Positions 38,501 through 64,000 of a DNA stretch of 64,000 bases are shown here, one piece after another. The notes under the pieces were generated by a model. It ran no database searches and was not told where the DNA came from. It saw nothing but the letters and a program-made list of their open reading frames with translations. This DNA comes from Heteronotia binoei. Taxonomy: Eukaryota. The DNA is taken from positions 53,444,001 through 53,508,000 of the forward strand of contig NC_083233.1 of NCBI RefSeq assembly GCF_032191835.1, read 5' to 3'. A program made the translations under genes and the position numbers. The first letter of the stretch is position 1, and every line of letters starts with the position of its first letter.

Positions 38501-39218
38501 AGCCGCTATCTTTAATTCTTCCATCGTAAAGCCCATGAAGAATGCCTTTCTCTCCTTTGACTAATTATAACCAACTCTCCCTTCCCCAATTTGACACTGG
38601 GTTGGATCCACCACCTTTTTGTTGCTCATTCTCATGGTTTTATGCACCTTAACTACACCCCCTATAGTTTTCTTCCATCTAGGACCAATGATTCCCACCT
38701 TAGTCGTTTTGCTGCCTCCTCCCATTTTCATCAGGAGAAAAGCAGGTTGGTTGGAGCCAACCAGTTTACAGCATTAACTTCCAAGACAGGCAAGTCATCT
38801 TCCAGGTTACTGGGCTGGGCTAGTGTGCATCAGGGTGGTTAATGGAGAATTTCAGCAAGTTCAAACTTTTTTTTTTTAAGTCAGTGATTTCTATATACGT
38901 CTAACGTTGCTTTATTGTCACTTTAATCTTGTAAACTAGCTTGGGCGTGGGGGGTGTATAATTTTTTAATATTCTCCGACTTCATTGTTGTTTTTTCCCC
39001 ATGGAAGGAATTCTGCACGTGCTCAGAGACAGGGCAGGTCAAAACAGCCGGCTATGCAGCCCGAAAGGCGGCAAACCGTACTAAATCATGGGGCGCAACT
39101 GCAGAGATACGTCTGGACCCACGAAGGCCTTCAAGTACAAAAAGTACGGGAGGGGATTTCATACAAAAGGTCACCTGCCTAGAATCCCGCTTTCTGCTGC
39201 CCCCCTCCCTCCCCTTAC

Positions 39219-39295
39219 CTGAAAAGCACCAGCTCCTGGCTTGACCGAGGCTGGAAGAAAGTGACGACGGGGCGAGGGCCGTCCTTGCCGTCCAT
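39219..39295 (-). CDS. C5orf52: C5orf52 homologue, exon 1 (MDGKDGPRPVVTFFQPRSSQELVLF)
   Basis: ATG in good Kozak context (gcaATGG) with an in-frame TGA upstream; donor AG|gtaagg, phase 2; resembles human C5orf52 QPQICFPRPRSAQQPVLFS as recalled. Confidence 0.82.
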
Positions 39296-45443: not shown

Positions 45444-46010
45444 ATGAATACAGCCTTCGGACTCATCCCCCTCCTATTCAGGCATCCGTCTTCCTATGGC
45501 CTGTCCCGGATCACCAGCAGCCTGTACCTCAGCGATGGGGAGGCTGCCAACAACAAGCTCTTCCTCTATGCCAACCAGATCACCACTGTTATCAATGTTT
45601 CCGTGGAGGTGGTCAACACCTATTTCCCAGGCATTTACTACATTCACGTTCCTGTCGCCGATACTCCCTCAGCCTGCCTTTATGACTTCTTTGACCCTGT
45701 AGCCGATAAGATTCACGCAGTGGACTTAAACGAAGGCCGCACCCTGCTGCACTGCGCCGCAGGCGTCAGCCGCTCCGCTGCCCTTTGCATGGCCTACCTG
45801 ATGAAGTACCGTTCGATGTCTCTGGCCAGCGCACACTCTTGGGTCAAGACCTGCCGTCCCATCATCCGGCCCAACGTCGGCTTCTGGCAACAGCTCATTC
45901 AGTACGAGGATAAACTCTTTGGGAAGACCACTGTCAGGATGATTCATTCTCCACTAGGGATGATTCCTGATCTCTACCAAAACGAAATCAGGGAAATGAT
46001 ATCCTTCTGA
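45444..46010 (+). CDS. DUSP18: Dual specificity phosphatase 18 (atypical DUSP, DUSP18/21 type), single coding exon, 188 aa
   Basis: Catalytic HCAAGVSRS; N-terminus FRHPSSYGLSRITSSLYLSDGEAANNKL..NQITTVINVSVEVVNT fits DUSP18 rather than DUSP14; acceptor cttcttag| at 45389. Confidence 0.93.
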   Translation: MNTAFGLIPLLFRHPSSYGLSRITSSLYLSDGEAANNKLFLYANQITTVINVSVEVVNTYFPGIYYIHVPVADTPSACLYDFFDPVADKIHAVDLNEGRTLLHCAAGVSRSAALCMAYLMKYRSMSLASAHSWVKTCRPIIRPNVGFWQQLIQYEDKLFGKTTVRMIHSPLGMIPDLYQNEIREMISF

Positions 46011-47471
46011 ACAACACTGAATGGGCGGCAGCAGGGTACAGAGCACACAGCACAACACAATGAACACTGATGCTATCTTCACTAAGTTGGGTACTTTTCA
46101 GTCCTTAGCACAGTGTACACTCAGCTGCCGTTCAAGGAAAGAGGACTGGCTGACAAGAAGACGATGCTCTGTGTGGTTTTTCTTCCACAGATAAAACAAG
46201 AAACATTGGGGGGGGGGATATGGTTAAGTCTACATTTGGCTACTTTGTGTTTCAGCAAAGCAGAGCTGTAGCTATAGTTGATGTTTGGTGGGGTGCGGGG
46301 TACGTTGGCCACTGCTAGGATGTTCAAGATCCCTTTCCTGAATGTGCATCTTTTGCTGGGAAAAGAAGCCATGGCGGCAGCCAGCCAGTGTAAGGGCGTC
46401 CTTCCTGAGGTTTAAGGAAAACTGAACAAGCAGGATTTTATCTACTTGTTCAGTGGGAAGTCAGCTTGTTCCTGACCAATTAGTGCAAAGGCTTACTTCT
46501 GTTTTATTAAATGACGTTTTGCAACCATAACATTACCAGACTACTTGTGTTTAGGTTTGTGCCTTGACCAACAACACTCCTTTCCCCACAGTGTGCTCCT
46601 AGGCGCCTTATCACCACCACTACATTTCCTGCAACAAAGCAAGATCCTGGGCCACTTCTCACCCAGGCCTGCCACAGTTTGCTGCCAGCCTACAGCACTC
46701 TCCCCACCCCCTCCGAGTTTTCTCATGTCTTCATTTTCTGTTTGCTGTTAGTCCACAGCTTCTTTACTGTTTCTCCATGCTTTCTCAAATTGGATTAAAG
46801 GTAGTTTCAGAATGCATAAAGAAACAATGAGGAAAACAGAGATAACAAATAAAAAACACCATAAGAAAGCTTGGAGAAAAACTATTACAGGTCAGCACCC
46901 CAAGCCATGGGTAAATCTTTGCATGAAAAGATGGCTAAAAGACTGTTCAGAGTACTGGTTGCAATACTAGACCCTCGCTTGGTTCCTGTCAATGGTGCCT
47001 GCACAAGAGTGCTGCCATGGATGTAGACTGGGCTCTCAGGCGTAAGGTCTGTTCATCAGTCACCCTTAGGAGCATCCCGGATGTGCCATTTGAAATGGAT
47101 TCTTCCCCTTGCCTTCTGGTAGGGCTGTCTCTGCATATGCATGTTTTTGCAAATAAATTCTGACGGCAGATAGGAATGCTTTCTCTGGATTAAAAATATG
47201 CTTTATTAGGTACATTTTAAAGTTCCCTGTACAAAAAAGCAAGATTATCTTACTAAACAAAAAGAAGTGAAATGGGTTTCCTCTGTTCACAAAGTCTTTG
47301 AGTCCCCAGAGGGACCTTTCTCAGCCATTACAAAGCCTCTGTCCACCAACCAAGGATTCTGTGATTCTTCTTCCTCATAAGCTCCACACCATAAGAGAAT
47401 CTACACACACAGTCTAGCTCTTAAAAAAAGGGGGGGAGGATGATTGCTGTAGCATGGGAAAGGTCAAAGGA

Positions 47472-47582
47472 TCATTTCTCTCTTGGCAAGGTGGAATCCA
47501 CACAGTTCAACCAGAAATTAGCACAGCTGGCATGATAACAGCTACCCTGGTATATAACCGGGTCAGAGTTTCCAATCTGCAC
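47472..47582 (-). CDS. Synergin-gamma-like paralogue, last exon (VQIGNSDPVIYQGSCYHASCANFWLNCVDSTLPREK*)
   Basis: ttgttttggcag| acceptor, phase 0, TGA; YHASCANFW(L/I)NCV matches the SYNRG C-terminus; AATAAA on - at 47202-47207. Confidence 0.9.
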   Translation of the reverse strand: MQIGNSDPVIYQGSCYHASCANFWLNCVDSTLPREK

Positions 47583-47744
47583 CTGCCAAAACAAATTAAG
47601 AATTAATTCCAGGACATTTTCTCAGCACCGACTGATGGCAAGCTTAGTTTACAACAAATGCTGCCTAAAAAGAATAGCCAACTTTCCTCCCCTTCTCCAA
47701 AAAGGACAACAATTTTAGCAACAGGCAGCCTTTATTTAGAGTAG

Positions 47745-48010
47745 GAAGGAAAGGTCCTCTGTGCAAGCACCAGTTGTTTCCAACTCTGGGGTGACTTTGC
47801 TTTCACAACATTTTCACAGCAGACTTTACGGGGTGGTTTGCCATTGCCTTCCCCAGTCATCTACACTTCCCCCCCAGCAAGCTGGGTACTCATTTTACCG
47901 ACCTTGGAAGGATGGGAGGCTGAGTCAACCTCAACCCAAAACCCCAGCTTCCACTGGGGATCGAACTCAGGTCGTGAGCAGAGCTTAGGACTGCAGTACT
48001 GCAGCTTTAA
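47745..48010 (-). mobile_element. Sauria SINE
   Basis: Head aaagctgcagtactgcagtcc on -, body gggtactcattttaccgacc...ggctgagtcaacc. Confidence 0.85.
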
Positions 48011-48249
48011 CATTTTATTTAGAGTAGTGATAAATGCAATCTCCCAGTTTCACTCTGGACAAAGCTTGGTAAGCCTGTCTTAATAGTTGCCTAATTATTT
48101 TGGGTTATGGAAGCTCTGGTTGTGGCAGCGAATACATTGGAAAGGTTTAGTGGTTCTGGAAGTGTCACCAGTACAGCTGATCTCTGCACATGTGCAACAG
48201 AAAAACATTACACCTCGTTAGTGTCTCCATAACATCAGCTTTAGACACA

Positions 48250-48445
48250 GAAACGTGAAGCTGCCTTCTACTGAGTCTGACCCTTGGTCTATCAAAGTCA
48301 GCATTGTCAATTCTGACTGGCAGCAGCATTCCAGGGTCTCAGGTCTTTCACATCACCAAGTACCTGATCCTTTTAAGCGGAGATGCTGGGAACTGAACTT
48401 GGACTTTCTGCATGCAAAGCAGATGCTTTACCACTGAGCTACATC
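48250..48445 (-). mobile_element. tRNA-headed SINE (second family); + copy at about 59065-59270
   Basis: Head ggggatgtagctcagtggtaaagcatctgctttgcatgcagaaagtccaagttca followed by a non-tRNA body. Confidence 0.75.
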
Positions 48446-48688
48446 CCCTTTTTGAGCTGTCCAAACCTGTCTCGTGGACCATCACGTATCAACCAGTCCC
48501 CAGCAGTTCTAGTACCATTTTGGCACAAATGGAATTGCAACTGTACTGTGGAATTATGTCAAAAACATAAGTAAGAATGATCTCTTAAGGACAGCATCAA
48601 TCCAAACAATACCACATGCATGAGACCTCTTCAGGCAGTATCTTGATGGGTCCATAGGAAAGCAATATGCTGTGTTTTTGTCAGTTAC

Positions 48689-48793
48689 CTCTGACTGCTG
48701 CTTCACCTCCGTTAAGCAAACCCCGCAGACATGACCTGGTGCCAGGTTAGGACCAGAGAGACGAGTATCACTTTCTGCTGATGGCTCCAGAAG
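48689..48793 (-). CDS. SYNRG-like exon (LLEPSAESDTRLSGPNLAPGHVCGVCLTEVKQQSE)
   Basis: First AG after a long pyrimidine tract (aag|), GAG|gtaact donor, 105 nt phase 0-0; CGVCL as in SYNRG ACGVCLLNV; exact acceptor less certain. Confidence 0.8.
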
Positions 48794-48975
48794 CTTCAAG
48801 TTCCATTGGTAAGGGCAAAAAGGGGGCAAGGAGGAAATAGATATTTTAGACTTTGACTTTCCTCCTACAAAACCAGTTTTAGTGACATTGTTACCAAGGT
48901 TTCAGCTCCAGCACTTCATGTCTCTCCCCCACCACCCAGATCTACTGTTTACACTCACCGACTGGAATGCCTTAC

Positions 48976-49136
48976 CAGAGTTTGGAACATGGGATGACCA
49001 AAGACAAGAAAGGACAATAAATTATTCCAGGCTAAGTCCACCTCTCGCAAAGCGTGTTGCAGCAGTTCGCTTGGTAGCTGCCGAGTCTTCACCCCACCTT
49101 CCATACGCTTAGACACCCGGTACACCTCAGACAAGC
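48976..49136 (-). CDS. SYNRG-like exon (GLSEVYRVSKRMEGGVKTRQLPSELLQHALREVDLAWNNLLSFLVFGHPMFQTL)
   Basis: ctcacctgcag| acceptor, CTG|gtaagg donor, 161 nt phase 1-0; matches SYNRG GVVEVYRVTKRVELG...WNNLIGFM. Confidence 0.92.
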
Positions 49137-49657
49137 CTGCAGGTGAGAACAAACAGCAAAGAGTAATGCATCCTGGCAAACATACATAGTAGAGTGGAGT
49201 ACAGAGGATTCTGGCACTTCAGGCTGCAGGTAGATTGCTCCACTTTGTAGAAATGGGACAATCCACTTTGCCATCTCAAGCGCTTGTGCATTTCTTTATT
49301 AGATTGGTCCATGGAGAAGTTTATGACATTTTAAACTACAATTTGTACTGTTTCTCACCCTTCCCCACTCATTCCCTCCCCAGCATCATGTAACTTATTC
49401 CCACCACACACCATTTCTGCAACACTTTAAAGACAATCCCCAACAGCAGCAAAGCACAGTCCGCCAAAACAGTTGCATGCCCCCCTTACATCTCACCCTT
49501 TGGCATCTGCCTGAAGGCTACTGTTGCCCAGGACTAAAGAGCTTTTAATATCCCAAAAGAAGCCACTGCAGGGAGTGATCACGTTCTATTCTGCTTCAGG
49601 TGTGATTCCATTGGTAGGTTTTGAATGGCAGTTTCCTGGATGGTGCATTCTCTACTC

Positions 49658-50157
49658 CAGGGGTGTCAAACACATTTTTTATGAGGGCTGAATCTGACAT
49701 AAATGAGACCTTGTCGGGCTGGGCCATGTCAGGCCAGACCATCCGTGTACCTATTTAAGGATAGGTAGCAGATATAAACTTTCTGAAGGATGCAGACAAA
49801 CACAATTAAAGATTTTTTTTTTTAAAAGCCCCCTTAAAATAAAGGGTTAAGTTAAAATAAAATTAACTTAACGGTACTTTCTTTGTATTTCTCCCATGGC
49901 ATCCAGGGAACTGGGCAAAGGAAGCTCTTTCCTTCCTTCCCCATGGGGCCAGGAAGGGGGGGGCTTAATCACTTGAGAAAATAGAAGCTTTGCTCTGTAG
50001 CTCCTGTGCAATTGCGCAAGCCTTGCAAAGCAAGCTGTGATGCAGAAGGCAGCAAGATATAGGGAGAAGGAAGCAGATGACAGCCAGTTGCTCGGGGACT
50101 TATAGGAGCCCTCCAGGGGCCTGATTTGGCCCCTGGGACACATGTTTGACACCACTG
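49658..50157. mobile_element. hAT-type non-autonomous element, 500 bp
   Basis: CAGGGGTGTCAAAC...GTTTGACACCACTG, perfect 8-bp TSD ctctactc. Confidence 0.9.
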
Positions 50158-50962
50158 CTCTACTCCTTTCTTCCTAGGTCTAGAGACTTTTTAAGGAGCC
50201 AAAGTAGACAACAGCCAGGTCTTCTTCTGCATGCTATTGAAGTTTGATTCTCTACAGTCTGCACATGGGAGTGCTTCGTGTATATTATCCTCAGGGCTTT
50301 TTTTGAATAGGAATGCAGTTCTGGCTGGCTTGGTATCAGGTTGTGTGGCCTAATATACAAATGAGCTCCTGCTGGGCTTTTTCTACAAAAAGCCATGTGT
50401 GAAACAATGGTGACATCAGGGGGTGTGGCCTAGTATACAAATAAGTTTCTGCTGGGAAGCCCTGATTATCCTTATAACCTGTTCACAAATTCCATACAGA
50501 ATGGGCAAAGAACTCAGTATCCTGGAATTCCCAAGTTTGGGTTTGCTTTGTTAAAGGTCTAGCCTTCGTGAATGCATAGATGACCGTGAAAGCATCTAGA
50601 CAGGACTTGGTGACTTCTTCCCTAACTCCCATTCAATTTTCTGGTGGTTTGGGCCCAACAAGTTAGGTCCGCCCATTGCTTGCACTGCTACCCTTAATGG
50701 TATACAAAAACCAGCAGTTGAAAAATTCATGTCATCTCAATGGGGTTGCTTCTGCCACCGCTATGAATACCCAGAATGTCACAGCCTTGTACTTGAATAA
50801 GAATTTAGACTGTTGCAACAGACCTGCTCAGACGCTGAGCATGAGGATAAATTCCAGATGGTAGATGTCAGAGAACACATTCCAGAGCAAAGAAACTGCT
50901 AGAGAGACCATTATACCCAGGCTTTAGCATAAATCATATGCATAAATCCTTTGATTCCATAC

Positions 50963-51059
50963 CCAAGATATATGCAGTCCCTGGTTTGGATAGCAGCACC
51001 TCGCTGCACACAGATGGATGGCTTATGCCTGCAAGGATTTCATTGGCCTTGCCAATTAC
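50963..51059 (-). CDS. SYNRG-like exon (VIGKANEILAGISHPSVCSEVLLSKPGTAYIL)
   Basis: cctctgcag| acceptor, G|gtatgg donor, 97 nt phase 0-1; matches SYNRG VIKKANDTLNGISSSSVCTEVIQSAQGMEYLL. Confidence 0.92.
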
Positions 51060-51950
51060 CTGCAGAGGATATAGGAGAGAGACATGTGAGCAGAGTGCTG
51101 GGGATGGTCACCTCTGCAAATCAGAGTTATTTCCCCCAGTAACCCTTCAGGATATGTGCCGCCAGCAACATAAATACACATTACAAAGCCATACAGTGAA
51201 CACGAGGCTTTTGCGATGTACCGTTAAATCTTGCATCACAACTGGCCATTTTACTGCTGAATTACAATCTACATTCCATTGCTTTACGATAGGTCTGGTA
51301 CGTCACTGACCAGCTAGCTTTGACTTTTAAAAAGAGCAGCTCTTTAAATATTTTTAGACAAAGGTCTGGTGAAAAAAGCTGCATCTCTGGGAGAATCATC
51401 AATGAAATAGAGCTTTGAGGAGGGCTTCTGGAGGCTCTCCTGAATGGTTTCAGTGCTCTGCACAGACGCTAAGCATAGTCCAGGAAGAGCACTATCACAC
51501 TCTCCTCTGACTCTGTTCTCACACTGGCAAAACAAACATCCTACCCCTTACATTCTTTGGAAACCTGAATCTGAGAAATCAGAACAAGTTATGCAACACG
51601 CAAACAACTGTCTTTTAAAGAATTAGGAATCCAGGAGAAGGGAGAGGAAACGACAAGAGGTTGACCCAGAAATAAATCAGTGTAATTACTAGGCCCAACC
51701 AGCAGAGGGGGATAGGATTACACACATGTATCACTGGGAAACTTTTTTTTTTAAATTCACTGCCAGCCAGGCAAAGTACTTATAATTCAATAAACAAAGG
51801 ACCGTAGGTGTAAAATACATATTGAACAATTGATTTCCAAGTTAGCTTAAATATCATTTTTAAATGCAGCAATTTATAATTCTCATTAACTTTTTCAAGG
51901 TGTTATTTATGTCTTTTAAAGCCCTACATGGCTTGGGACCACAGTATTTG

Positions 51951-52578
51951 TTTGTTTGTTTATTTATTTATTTCATTTATATCCCGCCCTCCCCCGCCTT
52001 GGCAGGCTCAGGGCGGCTAACAACATTCTATAAAACATACAATAGTAAATAAAACCTTTAGATTTACAATATAAAACATTAAACTTAAAATTAAAACCAG
52101 TCCAATAAATGCAGTTATACAGCGGTATAGATCTTTAGACCGCATTGCCGGATCCTTAATTACCGACCTTCTTAGCAGTCCAAGTGTACGAGTTTAAAAA
52201 GGGTGGTCTTGCAGGCCCTGCGGAACTGATCGAGGTTCCGCAGGGCCCGCACCTCCTCGGGGAGTCGGTTTCACAGGGTAGGGGCCGCGATCGAAAAGGC
52301 CCGTGCTCTGGTATTCTGATATTTAATCTCCTTCAGCCCAGGGATAGTCATTAGGTTTTTCCCAGTTGACCTCAGTGCTCTCTGGGGTTCATATGGGGAA
52401 AGACGGTCCCTCAGGTAGGCAGGTCCTCGGCGGCCAGGCTGTTGTTGGGACTCCCGAAACGGGAACATATACGGCCAGGGCTACGTGAACTGCACTGGCT
52501 GCCGATTATATACCGGGTCCAGTACAAAGTGTTGGTCATTACCTTTAAAGCCTTTTATGGCCGAGGTATATGGCCGAG
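51951..52578 (-). mobile_element. Young L2 3' end with an inverted 5' segment, inserted into an older L2 (about 51870-52980, +)
   Basis: (TTTG/TTTA)n tail at the left, TSD gtatttg (51944-51950 / 52579-52585), inversion junction at about 52430. Confidence 0.8.
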
Positions 52579-53299
52579 GTATTTGAAAGAGGTGTTTCTC
52601 CCATATGTTACTGCCTGGGAATTAAGATCACAGGGAGATGTTCTCCTAACTGGCCCACCAATCAAAGATGCTTGTCTGGTAGGTACATGCAAGAGGGCCT
52701 TCTCTGTGGTAGCCTCACAGTTAATGGAACAACTTCTCTGGGCAAGTGCACATGGCCCTCCCATTGTCAATCTTCAAGAGGCAGCTGAAGTTTTATTTGG
52801 GACTGGATTCTGGTCGATTTAGCTTTTGTTATCGGCAGTCCAATGTAGAATTTTCAAAACATTTTTATGGATTTTATAATTGCTTTTTAATAGTTGTTAT
52901 AATGTTTTATTTATATCGTAAGCCATCTTGAGTCCAGTGAGGCAGAAAGGGCAGCTAATAAGTGTTGTAAATAAATAAAGCCCACTCAGACATTTGAGGA
53001 GCTGGGAAGCAAGTCTTGCAAACTGTCTTAAAGGCCTTTATAGCCAAGAAGTAAAATCCAAGTGAAACATTAATCAAGAACGGCAAAAAGGGCATGAGGG
53101 AGGGAAATCAAGTGGAAAAGTGGGTGTTGAGGGCAGGGGTAATCTTAATGATTCTGGGGCAGTGGGCAAAATTCCCCAAGATAGTGTAAAAGAATCATAA
53201 GGCAAAGTTGGAATGGAAGGAGACTGAGACACAGAAGGGCTCACTCCCCTTCCAGCCTGCGTCCTATCGCAAGGATAGCAGGTAGGGGGCCAAGTGGAA

Positions 53300-55140
53300 A
53301 TACTCACCTCTGTCCCTGGTATTGTGCAATGCCAGGGCCATAAATAATAAAACCTCAGTCCTGCAGGATTTCCTAATTAGGTAGGACATGGACCTGGCTT
53401 GTATGACAGAGACCTGGGTGCGGGATGGGGAGATGGTAGCTCTCTCCCAAGTAGCCCCGCCCGGGTTCTCCGTTCTTCACCAGGCACAGACCAGCGGGCG
53501 GGGGGGAGGGGTGGTGTTTTTCATGCGGGAGGATTGCTCCTTCAGGATGCTTCCGCCTCCAAAGATCATGGGCATAGAGTGTGCTGGCCTGATGTGGGAT
53601 GCTGGGGAGAGTTTGGCAATCTGGCTGGTGTACCGTCAGCCTAACGCATCGGCCAGTGCCTTACCATCTCTGATGGAGGTAATAGCAGGCTGGCCATTGG
53701 AGCATCGTCGGCTTATAGTACTGGGTGACTTCAATGTCCATGCCGAGGACGCGGCTTCCACTCGGGCAACGAACCTAGTATCTTCCATGGCAGCACTGGG
53801 ACTCTCCCAATATATAACAACACCCTCGCATCGGGCTGGGCACATGTTGGACCTGATCTTTGCAGCTGGAGTATTAGTGGATCAGATTTCTGCCGAGGCA
53901 GTTCCATGGTCTGACCACTATGACCTGAAGGCCTGTATGGATACTCCACTCTTACCCCGTTTAGGCGGTGAGCAAGTTTTGGCTCACCCACGAAGCCAGA
54001 TGGACCCTTTGTGGCTTCAAATGGCTTTACAGGATCCCTGGCCCTCTGGTGACTCATTGGATGAGCTGGTGGAGATCTGGAATAGCCAGCTCTCTACAGC
54101 CATCAATGAGATCACTCCTCGACGTCCTCTTCATCCTCGTTCACAATATGATCCATTGTATACCCCGGAGCTGCAATCAATGAAATGGCAATTAAGATGA
54201 CTAGAGAGACAATGACGATGCATTCGTGACGGAGCTACGAGAACATTTTATAGATCATTTATGCGGACCTATGAGATGGCAGTCCAGGCCACAAAGAAGA
54301 CTTACTTTGCGTCCCAGATTGCGTCTGTGACCTCGCACCCAGCACAACTATTTAGTATAATTCGGTCACTAACAATCTTACCGCAAGGTAAACCAAACAT
54401 TAGAGAATTGGAAATCAGCTGTGAGGCTTTTTCGAGTTTTTTCGCAGATAAGGTCTTGTTGCTTCGACACGACCTTCCCGCCATAATTGATACAGTGAAA
54501 GAACTCGAGGCACCGAGCACGTCTTCTGTTCCATTTCTAGATTCCTGCACTCCACTCAGCCTGGAGGAAGTTGACAGGACCCTTTTGCTGTACGCCCTAC
54601 AACCTGTAGGTTGGACCCATGCCCGTCCTGGCTTATAAAAGCTAGCCAGGCATCGCTACGTGAGCCACTACAGGGTATTGTCAACAGATCCCTCATAGAA
54701 GGGATCTTTCCCACACCTCTTAAAGAGGCTGTGGTCCGTCCCCTCTTGAAAAAACCATCTGCAGATCCGGTCATATTGGCAAATTATCAGCCGGTATCAA
54801 ATCTTCTCTTTCTGGGCATGCGGTGGCAACTCAGCTACAGGGATTCCTGGATGACACTTCTGCACTGGATCCATTCCAGTTCAGCTTTTGACCAGGTAAC
54901 GGGATTGAATAGGTTCTGGTCACCCTCATAGATGACCTCATGCGACATCTGGATCGGGGCTGCTCAGTGGTGCTGTTATTATTAGATCTGTCAGCTGCAT
55001 TAGATACGGTTGACCATCAGCTACTGACTAGTCGTCTTGCCAACGTGGGGATTCAGGGGTCCGTCTTACAGTGGTTCGCCTCCTTTCTCCAAGGTTGGGT
55101 ACAAAGGGTGGTGATAGGGGAGGAATCATCCCAAAGGCGG
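53300..55140 (+). mobile_element. L2 LINE ORF2 (APE + partial RT), disrupted
   Basis: LACMTETW, GRGGGV, LGDFN, HMLDLIF, WSDH; DPCPSWLIK, EAVVRPLLKK, LLDLSAALDTVDH; stops and frameshifts. Confidence 0.92.
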
Positions 55141-55149
55141 TGTGCCACA

Positions 55150-56217
55150 GGGTGCGGTTCTGTCCCCGATGTGTGGGCTCTGCGGAGTCTTGACCAATTC
55201 CGCAGGGCCTGAAAGACCATCCTTTTTAGGCTGGCCTTCGCAGATTGCTGACTAAGGATGGCCGAATTGATGGACCTGCCAAAGTGACTCTGTTCAGTGA
55301 TCTTCGCCATTATGCAAACAGACAGAATAGTGCCAGGAACACCACTGTTACTGTTAAATTATGTAAATTGGAATGGTTTTTAAGATAATGCTGATTTTAA
55401 AATTACTGTATAACTTTTTAATGCTGATTTAAAATTACTGTATAACTTTTTATTTGAATATGTTGTTAGCTGGCGGGTGTGGTAGTTGGCCCCTTTCTTG
55501 GAGCATGACGACTTAGCAAGCTATGGTCACCTCAAGAATAGATCACTGTAATATTCTCTACATGGGGCTATCCTTGACCCTGACTCGGAAACTACAGCTA
55601 GTGCAGAACGCTGCAGCACGGCTGTTAATGGGGCTCCCTCGATGGGAGCACATTCAGCCAGTGCTGAAAGAGCTGCACTGGCTACCTGTTGTGTTCTGAG
55701 TCCATTTCAAGATGTTGTTATTGACCTTTAAGCCCTTTATGCTCAGGGGCCTGACTATCTACGGGACCGCCTTTCCCCATACGTTCCCCAGAGAGTACTG
55801 CGTTCAGGGACACAAAATCTACTGTCCGTCCCTGGACCAAAGGAGGCTAAGCTATGCTCCACACGGGCTAGGGCCTTCTCAGAGGCAGCACCAGAAATGT
55901 GTAATGCTCTCCCGGAGGCCATAAGGGCCCTGTGGGATCTCTCTACTTTCTGTAGGGCCTGCAAAACTGAACTGTTCCAACAGGCCTTTAATATCTAACT
56001 GGGAGAGGACTGCCGCCCCACATCATTACGATACTACATGATCACCATCAGAAAATAAGAACTTGCTTATATTGACGTGGTACAGCACCACATAATGGTT
56101 TTAAAATTGTAACTGCATTTTATTGGTTTTTAAATTGTAAATATAAATGCTGTTAGCCACCCTGAGTCCGCTTGCGGAGAGGGCAGGATAGAAATTTAAG
56201 GTAAATAAATAAATAAA
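55150..56217 (+). mobile_element. Two L2 3'-end fragments (about 55150-55490 and 55500-56217)
   Basis: LQLVQNAAARLL-type coding remnants, L2 3' UTR and (TAAA)n tail at 56205. Confidence 0.8.
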
Positions 56218-56419
56218 ATCCCAGAATCATAGTCCCAGAATCACTGTCACACCACTGCTGTCCCCCCACCAGAGCCAAGGAAAGGATCATGCCTTGCCTT
56301 GTGTCAAGTGAGCAGGAGCTGCCACCGGAAGATGCCAACTGCCCAAGTCTCAAATGGGGTGGGTAGAGTTGTCAACTCTAGCTGCAGAATACCTGGTGGC
56401 CTGGGGAGGAGATGGACTG

Positions 56420-57200
56420 TAAGCCAAAATGCCCTCAAAAGAGGTAGGGGAATTGATAGGTGGGCACCTTTGGCTTAAAAAGGATCTAGAATCTATGTAT
56501 ACAGGATTTCACTTCCAGAAATTATTGCTAAATATACCAAGGACACAAATTAAGTAAAACAATTAAAAATTTATTACAGAAATTATAGAACATACATACA
56601 AGGTAATGGATACATACAACACACATACAGTCCTAATAAAAATAGAGAGAAATGCATAGAGGTAACATAAGGATGGACAAACAGGGTGATAATTACTGAT
56701 TGTAGTTTTCAAGGAAGGCTCCAATGGCGACAAATGAGGACTAGGGGGAAGGGACCCTCAACTGGCCAAGAATTGGGGATGTATCTAAACAGCAGGAATG
56801 GGGTACTGCTAGATGCACAATTGTGGGGAGCTGAGTCACGGGTTATAAGGACTACCTTGAGCCCTTAGGGAATGGGAGGTACAGGGGCGGATGACAAGTG
56901 GTCAGCTGGTATATGACCTCAGAAAAAGGGGAGGCTCCGCAATGACCATAAGGGCTGGCCTTATGCGGTAGCCAATAGCCAGTTTATTGGGGGCACCTGA
57001 TTGGATGCCCATACCTGGCCAATGAGCAGACTTGGCCCTGGTTACCTGATTGGACTTTCAGGTAACAATGGGCCAAAGGGAGAGGCTCCAGGATGACCAT
57101 TAAGGGAAAGAATGGGAGAAATTATTGGGGTGGAGGTGATTAAAGCTATCAAAACTTATCTAAAAGGTGACAATAGATGGCCCAATTGCTACCTAAGGTA
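56420..57200 (-). mobile_element. Probable ERV-type solo LTR
   Basis: Clustered CCAAT/ATTGG boxes (56960-57055) and AATAAA on - near 56570; ends and TSD not resolved. Confidence 0.4.
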
Positions 57201-59426
57201 ACACCCAATCTATATGAAGAAACTTGCTCTGGGTGAAGGTGTTCTTCCTCTTCTTCATTCCTCTACTGGCACCATCCTTTGTCTTGAGTTCCGTTGGACA
57301 AAGGCTTTAGGCAGTCTGACAGGATCCACGCCTAAGATAAGCTTGATTGCCTTATGCATAGGTGACATCTGTTGAGTACGTGAGCCTCCCGCTTCGCTGT
57401 CATGGAGTCTGGCACTGCAGGAAGATAGTTGCTGGTGATGTTAGCCTACCAATATGGATTCTATGGTCAAGGCTGGAATCCACTTGCCCGGACAGTTCCT
57501 GGTGGCGCAACTTCTTCTGCTGCAACGGCCGAGATGGTACATGCACGGAGCCGCTGGAAACCCACCTGTTCTCCTGGTTAGCACTCTTCCAGAGACACGG
57601 AGTGCTGCTGCAATGTTGTGGCTGTTAGTACTCACATAAGTCCCTTACAATCTGGTAGACAAAACCCATGTTCTCCTGGCAGATGTGTGTGAGTTGAGTC
57701 TCCAGGCACCCTGGCAACCAAACGGGTGACTACGATGTTCTGAAATTAGGGGTCTTTTTCTCACAGGACCTCAGCAAATTATAATGCCCTGGAGTCCACC
57801 CTCCAAAGCAGCCATTTTCGCCAGGAAAACTGATCTCTGTCATCTGGAGATCTCCAACCTCCACTTGGAGGCTGGCAACCCTACTAGGGTGTCAGGTGCT
57901 GCAAATGCCAGGGACCTGAGTCTGAGGCAAGGTGGGTGTGAGTAGTTATCATTGGAAGCCAGATGCCTGAGCTGCAGTGGGGCATGGGTAGTGGCCAAAA
58001 CTTGGTCTTTTTCTTTTCCTCTCTCAGGACAGGGTCTGTGATAGCTGCCCCTGTCACCCATTGACGAAGACCAACCCTGGCCAAGAACTTACAAGTTTTT
58101 CAAAATACATCACAGGGCAGCAGGTTTCCACCCCACAACTTCATCTGAGAAGTAGGATAGAAATATTTTTAAAAACCCAACCTAAATAACTGACAACGAG
58201 GATATGAATTAATAAAACTAGAGATGTCACTTCAAAAAGATCCCAAGTGGCCCTGAGAGAGGATGCTGCAGCAGGCTCTCTGTACGTCTAGCAGCCAGAG
58301 GGCACCCTCCTGCCTCCTTCTTTTCAGATTTGTGATAAGTGAAGAAAGAGAACAAGAAGGGCAAGTCGGTGGCAGTTTAAGAAAGGAAAGCCAAAGACAG
58401 ACCAGAGGGAGAAAAGGGAATAGGCTTGCCAACTGCCTGGAGGAAAAAAATGGCTGATTCTTTTAACAGAGGCTTCATGTAATGCTTATGTACTAGGTGA
58501 TGTTATTTACCTCTGTTCCATATCTCTGTTTATCTCCAGCTGCCCATCTCCACATATTAGGGTTCTAATAAAAAGACAGGACATTTCCCCTCAGGGTGTT
58601 GGCAATCCTAAAAAGCAGGCATTTTAAAGAAGAGAAAACTACACTATGTACTTCAAGGCAAGATTAGCCCCCCGCCCCCAAAATATGCCATTAAAACAGC
58701 AATAAAAAAGGGAGTCATTTTGCACCTACTTATTTATTTAGTATTTATTTAGTAAATTTATATTCCACCCTTTCCCATGATGGGCTCAGGGCAGATTACA
58801 GACAAAATAAAATGGTTAATAAAATAATAAAAGTCAAAGCTCTACACCTTTGCATACAAGTTACAGTTATGTTCAATTAAAAATAAAACTTGAGAGACTT
58901 TTTTTAGAAATGTGATGCTGGAAGAGAAAGCCATACACAGGGATACCCTCATCCTTTCCCTTTATGCCATTTTCCCACTGAAAACTACCACCCACAAGTT
59001 GTGTTCACCTCCCCAGGTTGAAAAAAGTTATAGATATCCACCTTTTTTCACCAGCAGGGATAGAAGGAGGAGGGAGAGGGACCGTGGTTTAATGGCAGAG
59101 AATCTGTTTTGTACACATAAGGTCCCAGGTTCAATTTCCAACATCTCCACTTGAAAAGATCAGGTAGTAGGGGATGAAACCCTGAAGAGCCACTGCCAGT
59201 CTGAGTAGGCAATACTGATCCTGATGGGCCAAGGGTCCAATTCAGTATTTGGCAGCTTCATGTGTTCATGTAATCAAGAAGCCTGGGGAAACCTGGGTGA
59301 GAGTCAGGGCCAGTTTAAGTGCTTTGTCACCCCAACAAAGTACCTCCAGAATTTCCTTTCATGTAACCATTGGTCAGATCCATCCCCTCTTACACTGACC
59401 AGGAGCTAACCAAGGAGGATCCTTAC

Positions 59427-59497
59427 CTTATGAATCTGCTGTAGACATTTTATCAGATGGGCTGTCTCAGAGGTCATCAGCCTTGGCAGTCTGGAAA
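59427..59497 (-). CDS. Candidate upstream SYNRG-like exon (SRLPRLMTSETAHLIKCLQQIHK)
   Basis: cccttttttgtag| acceptor, AAG|gtaagg donor in phase 0; CL plus 5 residues to the exon end parallels SYNRG RCLGSALN|VIKKAN, but similarity is weak. Confidence 0.45.
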
Positions 59498-60589
59498 CTA
59501 CAAAAAAGGGTAACACAAGGTACACAATGTCACTCACCTAGCATTGCAGTCCTGGGGGAGAGGCTGATTCAATTCCTTTAGGACAGCATACAGATGAAAC
59601 ATTTTCAGTATTTTAACTCCATGCCAAGAGACAAGTGCATCAAGCACCTGCTAAAAGGACAGAGCTAAGTCAAAGTGAGAGTGGGTGGGGAGATCTTTCT
59701 GTACATCTGGATGCCTGTTAAAAAGGGGCTTACCCTTCCCACACTATCCCTTGGCACAGCTGTGCACAGAAGACCCTATAATTATTAGTTCATCAGCCAT
59801 CTGGCTAAGTAAACCAGAAGACTTCTTCACCTTCTGCAGGTGGGTAGTTTCAGGCAGGCCTTGAATTCAGCAGGAGCTCACAGGAGTGCAGCTGCTGAAT
59901 CTTTCTGAGAGTTCCCCCTCCACCTATCTTGTCCATTGAACAGTAGGTGCAGCTGCATAACAATCCCTGGATTAGAAGAGCAGCCAGCCAGCCACCAGGG
60001 ATTTTGCCACACCCCCAGCAGCCCTCATTAATCCCTGGAGGAGCTCATGCCACCCTTTCTCCACTCCTTATGTGATTTTGGGCGGCAGGTAGCTTGCTGG
60101 CCTTTTGACGGGGTGGTGGGGTGTGGCCAAGGAGAGCCCCAGGTGAGTGAGGCCTGCTTGGGCTGGCTGGCTCTCTAACCAGCCCCGGCAGGCCTCGCTC
60201 GTCCAGGGCTCTCCTTTCTTGCATCAGGTTGCTTTTGGTGGGGGGATATGCTAATGAGTTATGCTAATGAGCTCTGGCACCTATTTTTCTACACACCGAC
60301 CACTGGTTTCAGGTGCATCCTTTTTTATCCTATTATCCACAGCTGCACATGTCCAAAATTCCCTCTTCTGCAATAATAGAATTGTCAGCTGTTCTGATGG
60401 GGCAAAAACATTCTGTTTAAAACAATTTATTATAATGTAATATATTGTTGTAGCATATTATCATTTGTTATTAAAAATTAATACACATATATAACATTTT
60501 CTCCACCCCACCCCCCTTTTGGTGACCCCCGGCAGTGCCAACTCCCTTAACAAACAACTCCCTATTACTATTTTATTTAATTTGTTATA

Positions 60590-61015
60590 AGGTAATAAAC
60601 TCTATCTATTAAAGAATCTTTCTTCATAAAAAAGCAAGAAAAAATACCAAAGGCTATAATTGTAGTCCATCCTCATGATAGTCCTTCTTATTCATTCACA
60701 AAGAAATGAAAAAGTTATAATCCAATATCCTGTTTTTTTAAACTGTAATCCATATGTAGTTTCTTTAAAAATTAACCATTGTCAAAGATCACCAAATGTC
60801 CTTTAACGTTCCATTGCTTTTCAATATACTTTTGAAACTTTCCCCACTCATTTTTAAACTTCTCTAGATCTTGTTCTTTTAAGATTCTTGTAAGTTTGTC
60901 CATTTCACTCCAATGCATAACTTTCAAAGTCCATTCCCACATTTCTGGTATTTTGTCTTGTTTCCACATTTGCTCATATAATGCCCATGCAGCTGAAAGG
61001 ATATACCAAATTATC
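60590..61015 (-). mobile_element. L1 ORF2 C-terminus and 3' end
   Basis: WYILSAAWALYEQMWKQDKIP...WSEMDKLT...EWGKFQKYI, a Trp-rich L1 C-terminal pattern, followed by a T-rich 3' UTR. Confidence 0.8.
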
Positions 61016-61786
61016 ATTCTATCTTGCTTTTGAAATGTTTAATGTATGGAAATGGGCAGGTGAAGCATTTCACGACATAAAGGTAAATGGTAAATAGAAG
61101 CCTATTAAAGGAATGGGACATTTTTTCCAGGTCATTGGCAGCACTGAGCATAGGCAGGAACATTTAGTCAGTCAACCCACTAGTGTTCCCAGTTACTCAG
61201 GCAGCAGTTTTGAAAAATGTTTTAATGTCCTTGTAAGTCTCCAGGTGGGGGGGCACAACACCTCCTTAGAAGCAACATTCCTCCCCTTTCCCTTCCGCAC
61301 CCAGGAGCAAATCCCTTTTTTGAGGTCATGCTAACTGTGACATGTGAATACATTGTCTGCAACATTCTTCCTTCCAAATTATTGTTGTTGACACATGTAA
61401 ATATATGCAATTACACTCATATAATTAATCTGCTAAGGGGTTTTTTTTTAAACCAAATGACAGCTTTTCACGGGAGCCCTGCTGACCTCCTTTGAAGCTG
61501 TTTGCCTCACTTCCTGCCCTCTATCTTCAAATTCCATGTGGCACTCTAGCTTCAAAGAACAAGCCACTTCCACGGCCAAGGCAGTGTGTTTCTCAGGATT
61601 TCATGAATTAAGAATTGTGTAGAATAAATATGGATGACAAACATAGAGGGGTATTGCTGCAGAAAACAACTAGAAGAGATTCCAAAAACTCTGTGACTGA
61701 ACCTCCAGAATTTATTGTATTGTTAAACAGCAGTGTGGGGAAAGGGAGCTCTGGTTTTTTTGGTGGACCTTTGGTAGGGAGCATGG

Positions 61787-62075
61787 CCCCATAGCGCAGA
61801 ATGTTAAAGCTGCAGTACTGCAGTCCTAAGCTCTGCTCACGACCTGAGTTGGATCCCCGGTGGAAGCTGGGTTTTCAGGTAGCCAGCTCCAGGTTGACTC
61901 AGCCTTCCATCTTTCTGAGGTCGGTAAAATGAGTACCCAGCTTGCTGGGGGGAAAGCGTAGGTGACTGGGGAAGGCAATGGTAGACCACCCCGTAAAAAG
62001 TCTGCCATGAAAACGTGAAAGCAACGTCACCCCAGAGTCGGAAATGACTGCTGCTTGCACAGGGGACCTTTCCTT
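61787..62075 (+). mobile_element. Sauria SINE
   Basis: Head ...aaagctgcagtactgcagtcctaagctctgctcacgacctgagttggatccc; tail ggggacctttcctttt. Confidence 0.85.
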
Positions 62076-64000
62076 TTCTTCCTTGGTAGGGAGATCTCTC
62101 CTAAGCAGTTATCCAGATTTCAGGGCCCCATCACCACCTGTTGTCTGTCCTGTTTGGTGAAATACACAGGCAAATAATAGCTGGCGGGGTGGATTTGAAG
62201 ACAGAACAACAGTGTGATGGGGGAAGTTAAATCCTTTTCTTCCAGTGTGCAGCCTCAAGCTGTACAGAGATACCCCCCATGGACCATTTGCTACCTATCA
62301 AGAAAAAAAAATGCCCTGAAAATCTATTTACAGTTCATCCAGTCTAATGAGAGAAAGCAGGTTGCTTCCAAAATATCTTCTAAGGTTCAGCTCCAGCCCT
62401 GGGACGAGGAATTGCCAGATTTTCAAGCATGCCCTTGAACAAAGCTTGATTTGTAAGAATTAGCAGCTGGAGAACTGCTCAAACCCCTTTGCGCCCCTGA
62501 TGATAGATTGAGCCACTATTAAAGGCACAGCTAGCCCTGACCTGCAAAGCCCAGGCAAGCCTGATATTGTCAGATCTTGGAGGAAGCTAAGCTTTCACTA
62601 CTATTTGGAAGGGATGACCTCCAAGGAATACCAGGATTGTGATGCAGAGCTAGGCAATGGCAAACTACCTATGAAATGTCTTTTACCTTAAAAGCAAGTC
62701 TAACTTGCCACTTAGTGATGCATAACTCTAAAATAGATAGAACTTATGACTGCCAGGATCTGGCTATTCTATACACAATGCCATGATAATTAATTAAAGG
62801 CACAGAGGCAGGAACTGCCTTATCTCTGAGAAACTTTCAGTATAGCACTTTTTCCTCAGCATGAAGCCATACGAACAGCTTTATATAAGTGTGTTGAACA
62901 GACAAAGCTGCCTAATCTCAAGTATGCCTTAGCACCTCTCCCTCGTTTTAGAACTGTTGCTCTGTATGTAGCTGTACCTACATAGAACACCTGACCATCT
63001 GCAATACCTTTCGTTTTACTTGCAAACAACACCACACACCCTGGTTAGTTCACCCCTCAGACTGATACCAGAAGAAAAGTTTCAGTTTGCAGGAAAAACT
63101 TTTTGCCTACCCTGAGATCCAGACAATCCCCAGCAGGTGGAATGCAAAAGTGACCACTTGGTAAATGTGTCTTTGTGCTGAGTCTCTCTCCAAGGGAACT
63201 GATCCAGATGAGTACCTGGCAAATTTTTTACTTTCTCCAGGAAGCGTGCTGAGTGCCAGTGTAGAGTCACATGATGAAAACTGAGTTCTGTGCTGGACAG
63301 GTCCCTTCCCCCTTCCAGCATTATTGACACAACTGCAGGAGATATGGTTTGCAGATTCCAAAGAGTTTAGTCATTCAATGGGACAGAAAGAATCTCAGCT
63401 CTGTAACCTAACATGTAAAAATTTAACAGGTGAAACATTTATTGCGTGGGAGAAAATGTCTGGAAAAACTTCATCAGAATTTCTGTTTGTCATACAGCTG
63501 TTAAAACATAGGAGCCACACCAGAGCGGAAAGTTGGCAGCTCCATTTTCTTTTTAGAAATGAGAAAGACAATCCCAAACAAATTGACTTGGATGGGAATC
63601 TCACTGAAACCAGTAAAGTAAACCTAGTTAGGAGTGGGATGTAAATTGGGTAGAGTAATTCTGGAGATATGTGTTGCAGGCCTTTCTTTCAAAGGTAACA
63701 TATGAAGCGACTTTATAAAGACTCAGACCATTTTGTTTAATATTGGCTGCTCTGACCAGGGTTTGTAATAGACCTGGAGGAACAAAAGACCTGTCACTTT
63801 AATAGACTCTTAATGGGATGATACTTAACAGGTGCCCTGACCTGAATAGCCCTCAGGAACCTCTCATCTTGTCAGATCTGAAAGCTAGACTATAAATGAA
63901 AAAATGTCAGGGTGAAACTATGTTATCAAAACATATATGTAATAGGGAAAACCCTTTTGGCCTCTACTTCTGAATAGACTCTGCTCCTAAATAATCTAAG

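Follow-up and report, generated by a model that had tools for sequence, protein, structure and literature searches.

The gecko Heteronotia binoei carries, next to DUSP18, a stand-alone gene for the C-terminal domain of synergin gamma (SYNRG_C). It spans positions 47472-63321 of the window, by which we mean the whole 64,000-nucleotide stretch of DNA analysed here. The gene is complete and transcribed, and is an orthologue of the proteins that databases call 'synergin gamma-like'. We infer that it originated in an ancient duplication of a block holding a DUSP gene and a SYNRG gene, and we put the probability of this reading as a whole at about three in four. The evidence supports two of its parts: that the synergin-gamma C-terminal domain is here encoded by a gene of its own and not by the last (3') exons of a full-length SYNRG, and that this gene is a paralogue of SYNRG. 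Its status as a 2R ohnologue is plausible.

Synergin gamma (SYNRG, or AP1GBP1) is an AP-1 gamma-ear partner of about 1300 amino acids that acts in a complex with aftiphilin and HEATR5B (p200). In human, SYNRG presumably lies tail to tail with DUSP14, and we take its canonical neighbours to be DUSP14 and DDX52. A neighbourhood of DUSP18 and a C5orf52-like gene is, we assume, the mark of a 22q12-type block. The original prediction for this DNA described the protein as unstudied. We indeed found no paper on the family, but NCBI, UniProt and Pfam already label it. The family is known through automatic annotation, and our search turned up no experimental study or published evolutionary analysis of it.

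The locus comprises the following features, in order of position:

45444..46010, plus strand: DUSP18 coding sequence, single exon, 188 amino acids and stop (open reading frame; Pfam DSPc, E 4.7e-34; called in the genome's own annotation)
46011..46650, plus strand: DUSP18 3' UTR, end approximate (RNA-seq depth in runs X3 and X5 continues from the coding sequence and is about 1 past roughly 46650)
47202..47207, minus strand: candidate AATAAA for polyadenylation of the SYNRG-like transcript, about 265 nt past the stop (pattern scan)
47472..47582, minus strand: coding exon 5, the last, 36 codons and TGA at 47474-47472 (tblastn, 92-95% identity to Gekko japonicus and Paroedura picta proteins)
48689..48793, minus strand: coding exon 4, 105 nt (Gekko japonicus protein alignment and GT-AG sites)
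48976..49136, minus strand: coding exon 3, 161 nt (tblastn, E 5.6e-29, and splice sites)
50963..51059, minus strand: coding exon 2, 97 nt (tblastn, 94% identity to the Gekko japonicus protein)
53388..55700, plus strand: decayed LINE with APE endonuclease and reverse-transcriptase fragments (Pfam Exo_endo_phos 6.5e-08, Exo_endo_phos_2 2e-07, weak RVT_1)
59427..59497, minus strand: coding exon 1, with acceptor at 59497, conserved ATG at 59477-59475 and donor after 59427 (coding part 59477..59427)
63111..63321, minus strand: upstream 5' exon, donor CAGG/GTAGGC at 63111, 5' end provisional (tblastn with the 250-aa Paroedura isoform)

The intact SYNRG-like gene occupies the minus strand and meets DUSP18 tail to tail. 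Its stop codon, at 47474-47472, is separated from that of DUSP18, at 46008-46010, by about 1.46 kb. The DUSP18 reading frame is 87% identical to Paroedura picta DUSP18 and its best matches are all DUSP18 or DUSP21. The predicted convergence of the two genes is borne out. A C5orf52-like gene (DUF5528) lies upstream of DUSP18. The SYNRG-like gene's neighbour in the window is DUSP18, not the DUSP14 of a 17q12-type block.

Five coding exons with compatible phases and introns that are all GT-AG give a full reading frame of 174 amino acids. The product of exon 1, MTSETAHLIKCLQQIHK, agrees with the orthologues' N-termini across the range from sharks to geckos, over which the protein's own start codon is also conserved. 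Exon 2 is bounded by the acceptor CTCTGCAG and the donor GTATGG. Helices 2-3 of the predicted bundle, including the invariant WNNL motif, are encoded in exon 3 and the CGVC pair of a putative zinc site in exon 4; exon 5, whose acceptor reads TTTTGGCAG/GTG, encodes VQIGNSDPVIYQGSCYHASCANFWLNCVDSTLPREK. The four minus-strand exons originally predicted are real and their phases fit, but the coding exons number five, and the supposed 156-aa C-terminus of a larger protein is a complete 174-aa protein with a conserved start. The outer limit given at that time, 59497, is the exact acceptor of coding exon 1.

The genome's own annotation likewise has a minus-strand gene beginning at 47472; its model is 251 aa long. 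The exon at 63111..63321 gives the 77-residue N-terminal extension of this isoform. By tblastn, the 250-aa Paroedura isoform matches 63321-63184 and 63190-63113, in two different frames. Because the reading frame is not conserved, the extension is probably 5' UTR.

Transcription is seen in RNA-seq run X4, where three reads, each starting at a different position, link 48793 with 48976 across the exact predicted intron; these three, in the roughly 6% of one run that was read, make up the junction evidence. The joint skips 182 nt, and its plus-strand ends, CT..AC, are GT..AG on the minus strand. The spliced transcripts on which the original prediction hung exist, for one intron. The same run gives thin cover on the remaining SYNRG-like exons, including bins 47228-47609 near the candidate AATAAA. 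Two other runs from the same species show no reads on these exons in the approximately 6% of each that was read. Against Eublepharis, dN/dS is 0.25 for the SYNRG-like gene and 0.23 for the neighbouring DUSP18. The gene is under purifying selection.

What kind of protein does it encode? With Gekko japonicus 'synergin gamma-like' the window protein shares 92% identity. A precomputed Pfam match places SYNRG_C (PF25999) on the genome's own product with E at most 1e-5, and the SYNRG_C assignment rests on such precomputed matches together with database names. Our own Pfam-A scan of the Gekko japonicus orthologue returned zero matches, that copy of Pfam-A apparently being without the PF25999 model. 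The similarity to synergin gamma proposed at the outset stands on the PF25999 match and the NCBI names of the orthologues. All of the family motifs (PSVCSEVL, EVYRVSKR, WNNL, CGVCL and YHxSCANFWLNCVD..LP) occur in the 174-aa protein and vary little or not at all in alignments; among 59 sequences from sharks to geckos, conservation reaches 90% or more at about 40 residues. In the 174-aa protein, a pattern scan turned up no gamma-ear motif (DFxxF-type or psi-G-[PDE]-psi), NPF motif or clathrin box. The Pfam scan of the Gekko japonicus orthologue found no EF-hand or EH family, and scans of the exon pieces were likewise empty of an EH domain. The idea of a second AP-1 accessory protein finds no support here: the sequence lacks the EH domain and the gamma-ear, NPF and clathrin-box motifs.

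AlphaFold2 (mean pLDDT 81, pTM 0.78) predicts a three-helix bundle (helices 3-27, 42-67 and 73-96) followed by a small knuckle with a beta-hairpin and helix at 147-166. Apart from RING matches without significance, structure searches returned only generic helical bundles, with Z up to 10.6, below the meaningful level for helices. Alignment columns show conserved Cys126, Cys129, His155 and Cys158 (and Cys165) in the knuckle. The arrangement resembles a C2HC zinc site, and we guess, with low certainty, that it may bind zinc. Constraint is confined to four or five ligand positions, and in Eublepharis Tyr replaces the first Cys of the C-Y-H motif and Glu replaces the Gly of CGVC. The last 50 residues, with C-x2-C ... 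H-x2-C, beta-hairpin and helix, also recall RING and treble-clef zinc knuckles, but the RING leads are non-significant (language-model feature score at most 0.86; Foldseek E 0.79) and the ligands suffice for one metal site, the second site of a true RING being missing. E3 ligase activity should not be assumed.

The family is wider than the original prediction, which had it retained in reptiles. We collected 88 relatives of about 100-270 aa, all but one with PF25999, from squamates, turtles, amphibians, coelacanth, sturgeon, sharks, rays and chimaera. Those from Gekko japonicus, Paroedura picta and Eublepharis macularius are 81-92% identical, with the same five coding exons in the same place beside DUSP18. 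Entries named 'synergin gamma-like' or 'Synergin gamma C-terminal domain-containing protein' in NCBI RefSeq and UniProt show essentially no difference from the window gene and are its direct orthologues. The family is single-copy; its tree matches the species tree and groups the window protein with Paroedura and Gekko. Judged by this distribution, the gene is older than the divergence between cartilaginous and bony fishes. A library-wide search with the 58-aa exon gave three marginal matches only.

Exon structure and gene order are conserved as well. Gecko, Eublepharis, sturgeon and frog share exon lengths of 51, 97, 161 and 102-105 nt; the 97-nt exon 2, for instance, recurs in Eublepharis, sturgeon and Spea. 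The order SLC35E4-like gene, SYNRG_C gene, convergent DUSP is common to sturgeon, frog and geckos. In both sturgeon and the frog Spea it reads TPT(+), SYNRG_C(+), DSPc(-), and the layout of the Eublepharis locus is that of the window.

No orthologue was found in birds, crocodilians, mammals or teleosts by word-indexed search of proteins up to 1.75 times the query length and by inspection of 10-kb flanks. Platypus retains a decayed last exon at the syntenic place. Its acceptor is kept, Cys158 has become Trp and Cys165 Arg, and it scores 23.0 bits against a maximum of 13.2 among 150 shuffles. In a marsupial and in mouse, no remnant was found within 10 kb. The platypus relic and the empty marsupial and mouse flanks support a loss of the gene in mammals, as originally suggested for the region beside mammalian DUSP18. 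The gene was probably lost in archosaurs and teleosts too.

We propose that a block with a DUSP-SYNRG pair was duplicated in ancient times, most likely in a vertebrate whole-genome duplication, and that this gave rise to the SYNRG-like gene together with DUSP18. The long N-terminal part, with its EH domain and gamma-ear motifs, would then have been lost or never kept. Loss of the gene in mammals, and probably in archosaurs and teleosts, would have come later.

A smaller event might account for the same gene. The 3' end of SYNRG could have been copied on a small scale, by a partial, local or segmental duplication, and have landed beside DUSP18, in which case it would not be an ohnologue of whole-genome duplication. 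That the gene holds the C-terminal domain only speaks for such a copy, and its retained introns fit a DNA-level copy of any size. Yet the gene sits tail to tail with a DUSP14/18-family gene, as human SYNRG presumably does with DUSP14, and such a placement is unlikely to arise by chance twice. Its age, greater than the cartilaginous-bony fish split, fits the time of the vertebrate duplications, and the order of SLC35E4-like, SYNRG_C and DUSP genes is fixed from sturgeon and frog to geckos. We consider the small-scale copy unlikely.

Might the exons instead be alternative 3' exons, or read-through, of the upstream SLC35E4? NCBI files a 191-aa SYNRG_C protein of the ray Narcine bancroftii as 'solute carrier family 35 member E4 isoform X6', in sturgeon and frog an SLC35E4-like gene precedes the SYNRG_C gene by about 5 kb on the same strand, and the window's coding exon 1 opens with an acceptor and is preceded by a further exon. 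However, the protein has a start codon to itself, which is conserved all the way from sharks to geckos, and shares no residues with SLC35E4; sturgeon, frog and three geckos have separate gene models; and the 63.1-63.3 kb exon is not TPT-like, nor is its frame conserved with Paroedura. That there is no independent gene here seems to us distinctly improbable.

Still less probable is that we are looking at the 3' end of the genome's only full-length SYNRG, fast-evolving and relocated to DUSP18. For Anolis carolinensis, Xenopus laevis, Latimeria and Varanus, some databases do list the short protein as 'synergin gamma', but NCBI uses the '-like' name in most species, which implies that another gene holds the name. 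The lengths also speak against it: 251 aa for the model in this genome and 170-270 aa for its orthologues, with a common start Met. The window contains the 5' exon, which lacks conservation at the protein level, no EH domain was found, and DUSP18 and the C5orf52-like gene are neighbours of the 22q12 type. Finally, a decaying, non-functional remnant whose frame stays open by chance in geckos would suit the very low expression in the runs examined, the lack of reads in two of three raw-read runs and the losses in several vertebrate lineages, but we dismiss it in view of the intact frame, canonical splice sites, spliced reads, DUSP18-like dN/dS and conserved residues.

If the gene descends from an ancient DUSP-SYNRG block, how far does its product still resemble synergin gamma? 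By precomputed match the two share the SYNRG_C domain at the C-terminus, and each gene has a DUSP14/18-family gene tail to tail, for SYNRG presumably DUSP14. The remaining neighbours differ, the gecko gene lying by DUSP18 and an SLC35E4-like gene and synergin gamma, we presume, by DUSP14 and DDX52. The gecko protein has 174 aa against about 1300 and lacks the EH domain and the gamma-ear, NPF and clathrin-box motifs. The gamma-adaptin-binding region of gamma-synergin is its middle, residues 518-786 (PMC2169493), which has no counterpart in the gecko protein.

With low certainty, the SYNRG-like protein may make the protein contact that synergin gamma makes through its C-terminal domain. Because that contact would likely be made without links to AP-1 or NPF proteins, the protein could be an alternative or competing subunit, by analogy with CLBA1 and aftiphilin. 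CLBA1 is a short aftiphilin paralogue predicted to compete with aftiphilin for the same HEATR5 surface (PMC10798858). The likeness is one of analogy only: each is a short protein made up of a single conserved domain from a large HEATR5B cofactor, but the sequences are unrelated, and mammals keep CLBA1 but not the SYNRG-like gene. In the same study, AlphaFold2 gave no confident contact between HEATR5A/B and gamma-synergin (PMC10798858), a point against our proposal.

Two minor features complete the locus. The decayed LINE lies antisense within the 8.4-kb first intron of the SYNRG-like gene and plays no part in its function. The DUSP18 3' UTR contains a plus-strand ATTAAA at 46506.

The minus-strand 'synergin gamma-like' gene that lies tail to tail with DUSP18 is real, intact, constrained and spliced. 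Its exons were fixed by aligning the 174-amino-acid Gekko japonicus protein (P0124) and its Paroedura picta orthologue to the window, which gave the following coding exons.

59477..59427, minus strand: coding exon 1, 51 nt coding, with the ATG at 59477 and the exon acceptor at 59497
51059..50963, minus strand: coding exon 2, 97 nt
49136..48976, minus strand: coding exon 3, 161 nt
48793..48689, minus strand: coding exon 4, 105 nt
47582..47475, minus strand: coding exon 5, 108 nt, followed by TGA

All of the introns are GT-AG with compatible phases, and the spliced frame is open, yielding a 174-residue protein that is 92% identical to P0124 and 90% identical to the Paroedura protein. The original prediction had the outer coordinate, 59497, exactly right. 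Its four exons and 156 residues become five coding exons and 174 residues in the P0124 alignment, and what it took for the tail of a large protein is a small protein in its entirety. A 176-nt exon starting at 48864, with the acceptor TTTTGTAG, was rejected: the P0124 alignment puts the true acceptor at 48793. That model also demanded an extra exon of 3n+1 nt, for which a splice-site scan offered only LINE-antisense candidates; it lacked the exons at 51059..50963 and 49136..48976 that the alignment adds. A decayed LINE (53388-55700, plus strand) does lie antisense within the 8.4-kb first coding intron, with an APE endonuclease ORF of 270 amino acids (Exo_endo_phos, 6.5e-08) followed by broken reverse-transcriptase pieces.

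The genome's own gene model is longer, at 251 amino acids, with 77 extra residues encoded by an exon further upstream (63321..63111) and by the 5' portion of coding exon 1. When this extension is compared with the 250-residue Paroedura model, its two halves fall in different frames; it is also missing in nearly all other orthologues, which begin at the same methionine. For these reasons we take it for 5' UTR, called as protein-coding on account of the longer ORF that it gives.

Constraint on the gene is comparable to that on its neighbor. All five exons of the Eublepharis macularius orthologue were recovered exactly from its locus (L002), and dN/dS between the two species is 0.25, as against 0.23 for the adjoining DUSP18. 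Among 59 members of the family, spanning sharks to geckos, about 40 positions reach 90% conservation or more.

Transcription was examined in three raw-read RNA runs labelled as the same species (X3, X4 and X5), about 6% of each being read and placed on 45700-51400. X3 and X5, which derive from a single sample, have deep cover over DUSP18 and its 3' UTR, as far as about 46650, and leave the minus-strand exons bare. X4 has no DUSP18 reads and thin cover on the synergin gamma-like exons. Three X4 reads, each with its own start, connect 48793 with 48976, skipping 182 nt with the ends CT..AC (GT..AG on the minus strand); this joint is exactly the predicted third intron. No other junction of the gene was seen in the three runs at this read depth. 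From the junction reads and the contrast among runs it follows that spliced transcripts are made, at low abundance and depending on the sample. The opposite cover, DUSP18 only in X3/X5 and its neighbor only in X4, suggests that the convergent genes are used in different tissues and to the exclusion of each other, as judged from coded samples and about 6% of each run. Very high read piles at 47750-48010 and 49520-50470, with many variants, loose ends and back-joints, appear in all RNA runs, metatranscriptomic contigs included; because of the loose ends in every run, they are expressed interspersed repeats (SINE-like) within introns and not exons. The X3/X5 reads over 45700-46650 (plus strand), most of them 95-99% alike, also share fixed differences from the assembly in every read, among them 45755 C>T, 45765 G>A, 45833 A>G, 46011 A>G and 46007 C>A, the position at which the final DUSP18 codon ends. 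These samples therefore come from another lineage or individual than the assembled genome.

How widely is the gene distributed? With P0124 as the query, a search yielded 88 proteins of about 100-270 amino acids, nearly all with the Pfam domain SYNRG_C (PF25999), from squamates, turtles (Emydura, Pelusios), frogs, a salamander, a caecilian, the coelacanth, sturgeon, sharks, rays, skates and a chimaera; Xenopus is among those that retain the short gene. In NCBI they go by 'synergin gamma-like' (for a few species by 'synergin gamma isoform X2') and in UniProt by 'Synergin gamma C-terminal domain-containing protein'. None of the 88 is from a bird, crocodilian, mammal or teleost, an absence that is only suggestive, as the search is confined to proteins sharing exact words with the query and measuring 0.55-1.75 times its length, a range far short of the roughly 1300 residues of canonical synergin gamma. 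In a maximum-likelihood tree, 42 members branch as their species do, so that the family looks like a single-copy orthologous group; the window protein stands with Paroedura and Gekko, and the geckos, squamates, turtles, frogs and chondrichthyans each form a starred clade. Retention in reptiles, as first proposed, holds for squamates and turtles but is too narrow: amphibians, the coelacanth, sturgeon and chondrichthyans keep the gene too.

The chromosomal setting is equally stable. The plus-strand ORF at 45444-46010 encodes 188 amino acids with a DSPc domain and is 87% identical to Paroedura picta DUSP18. Its relatives, among the 120 matches listed, are DUSP18 or its mammalian retrocopy DUSP21, save for a few mislabelled or unnamed entries. 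The genome annotation (GCA_032191835.1, CM063335.1) has a minus-strand DUF5528 (C5orf52-like) gene upstream of DUSP18 and, downstream, a minus-strand gene whose product carries SYNRG_C. This block is the counterpart of human 22q12.2, where the order is TCN2, SLC35E4, DUSP18. Eublepharis has the same layout of DUF5528, DUSP18 and a convergent SYNRG_C gene, here of 175 amino acids. In Acipenser ruthenus and Spea bombifrons, a TPT-family transporter (356-357 amino acids, SLC35E4-like, plus strand) is followed by a SYNRG_C gene (plus) and a DSPc gene (minus) that is 51-53% identical to gecko DUSP18, the one DUSP with which it was compared. Gecko, Eublepharis, sturgeon and frog agree in the lengths of their coding exons: 51, 97, 161 and 102-105 nt. 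In the great white shark the gene extends over 44 kb and likewise has five coding pieces; no DUSP lies within 10 kb of it.

Three smaller observations concern this block. The DUF5528 gene stands head to head with DUSP18 in the gecko (window 35444-39295), Eublepharis, platypus, a marsupial and Mus caroli (loci L003, L008 and L009), an old pairing conserved among amniotes. In Narcine bancroftii, a 191-residue SYNRG_C protein (P0178) bears the NCBI name 'SLC35E4 isoform X6'; the two genes, adjacent on the same strand, may share 5' exons there, or the models may have been merged. By tblastx, the sturgeon SLC35E4-like region gave one weak match in the window, in the C5orf52-like gene region (36214-36342, 39.5% over 43 amino acids, E 1.8e-06), probably chance or a repeat.

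The gene is older than the split between cartilaginous and bony fishes and has kept its introns. It is paired tail to tail with a gene of the DUSP14/18 family, mirroring the arrangement that we take human DUSP14 and SYNRG to have. These three features make a block duplication the simplest account of its origin, most likely in one of the two vertebrate genome duplications; a smaller, partial duplication is a less probable source. Several paralogue pairs join 17q11-q12 to 22q12 (EWSR1/TAF15, GAS2L1/GAS2L2, RASL10A/RASL10B, AP1B1/AP2B1, SEZ6L/SEZ6 and MYO18B/MYO18A), and they fit an origin by block duplication. If that origin is true, SYNRG and the short gene would add one gene pair to this type of paralogy.

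The putative link to synergin gamma itself is drawn from the Pfam name, precomputed PF25999 hits and the NCBI and UniProt names. Neither single exons nor P0124 matched anything in the local Pfam copy, which apparently lacks PF25999; a PDB sequence-profile search returned no relative, and a library-wide HMMER search with a 58-residue exon query returned three marginal, unrelated matches only. Compared with canonical synergin gamma, the short protein shares the C-terminal domain and fails every other defining feature. Its gene sits in the DUSP18 block rather than the DUSP14 block. Pfam scans of the exons and P0124 detected no EH domain, and the protein has no gamma-ear, NPF or clathrin motifs. 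The gamma-adaptin-binding region of gamma-synergin occupies residues 518-786, with the EH domain N-terminal of it (PMC2169493); neither has a counterpart here. The sequence gives no support to a role as an AP-1 accessory protein, as originally envisaged. The idea of a paralogue was right in outline, but this is no hidden second synergin, since the family is labelled automatically in dozens of genomes and has a Pfam model.

An AlphaFold2 model built from a 59-sequence alignment is confident (mean pLDDT 81, pTM 0.78). It predicts a three-helix bundle (1-105), a disordered linker (106-122) and a small C-terminal knuckle with a beta-hairpin (147-154) and a helix (156-166). Conserved residues in this part, Cys126-x2-Cys129 and His155-x2-Cys158, have the look of one C2HC zinc site, and Cys165 lies close by. 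Structure searches (Foldseek PDB, ESM Atlas by shape and VIA-align wide) found generic bundles (spectrin repeat, syntaxin Habc, GAT) with Z up to 10.6, a level that carries no weight for helical bundles, and RING matches in non-significant rows only. A language-model atlas gave RING and Rubicon-homology zinc domain leads, all below 0.9 and so beneath the level of trust. We therefore commit only to a compact, probably metal-stabilised module for protein interaction, which would take part in the same contact, whichever it is, as the C-terminus of SYNRG.

What might such a module do? Together with aftiphilin and HEATR5B, synergin gamma makes up a stable complex (PMC10690479). CLBA1, a short aftiphilin paralogue, is a predicted competitor for the same HEATR5 surface, and no confident contact is predicted between HEATR5 and gamma-synergin (PMC10798858). 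By analogy, the short protein could be to synergin gamma as CLBA1 is to aftiphilin, a short subunit without the AP-1 link. The module would anchor gamma-synergin in the aftiphilin/HEATR5 complex, and the short protein would be a free-standing copy of it. Having no links to AP-1 and no EH domain, this copy would replace or compete with the usual subunit and so switch HEATR5 complexes away from AP-1, a regulatory layer that mammals, archosaurs and teleosts would each have dropped independently. This reading is speculative; we give it roughly one chance in eight.

Loss was checked by running the family profile against the 10 kb on the downstream side of DUSP18, translated in all six frames. Platypus has one clear match on the expected strand, 6.1 kb beyond the DUSP18 stop (L003, 16920-16603, minus), scoring 23.0 bits, where the best of 150 local shuffles reached 13.2. 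It is an open stretch of 106 codons with an intact, pyrimidine-rich acceptor and reads ...HLHVTWANFWPNRVDSDLP..., in which Trp and Arg stand at two conserved cysteines. We did not find the upstream exons in platypus, and we read the match as a decayed last exon. Crocodile, marsupial and Mus caroli gave no significant match within 10 kb, and emu one at the expected place (E 0.14), too weak to count in its 10-kb flank. Given the decayed platypus exon and the lack of marsupial and Mus caroli matches in these flanks, mammals apparently lost the gene, monotremes keeping a relic, much as the original prediction held for the region beside mammalian DUSP18. In archosaurs, over the same 10-kb flanks, it was probably lost too.

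The family already carries an automatic database name and a Pfam model and is not a new kind of system; we found no paper on it. This analysis adds the true anatomy of the gecko gene, its position between SLC35E4 and DUSP18, which is conserved between sturgeon and gecko, and the wide retention outside mammals, archosaurs and teleosts, with the platypus relic. SYNRG_C probably has an autonomous role, since from sharks to geckos it survives alone as a single-copy gene under purifying selection, its place kept from sturgeon to gecko. The short protein is a simple handle for finding the partner of the SYNRG C-terminal domain, for example in Xenopus. Mammals have lost it, as apparently have archosaurs and teleosts, and these repeated losses make it well suited to asking which trafficking cofactors are dispensable. 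A GC-rich, unspliced Logan contig of 1.4 kb (L010, P0211; run SRR32623559) contains a homologue of the 161-nt exon (LSEVYQVSRRLAHGMRAQRVASDRLQQALREVDLAWNNLLSFL) with intron read-through; if its source is a bird or crocodilian, the gene was not wholly lost in archosaurs.
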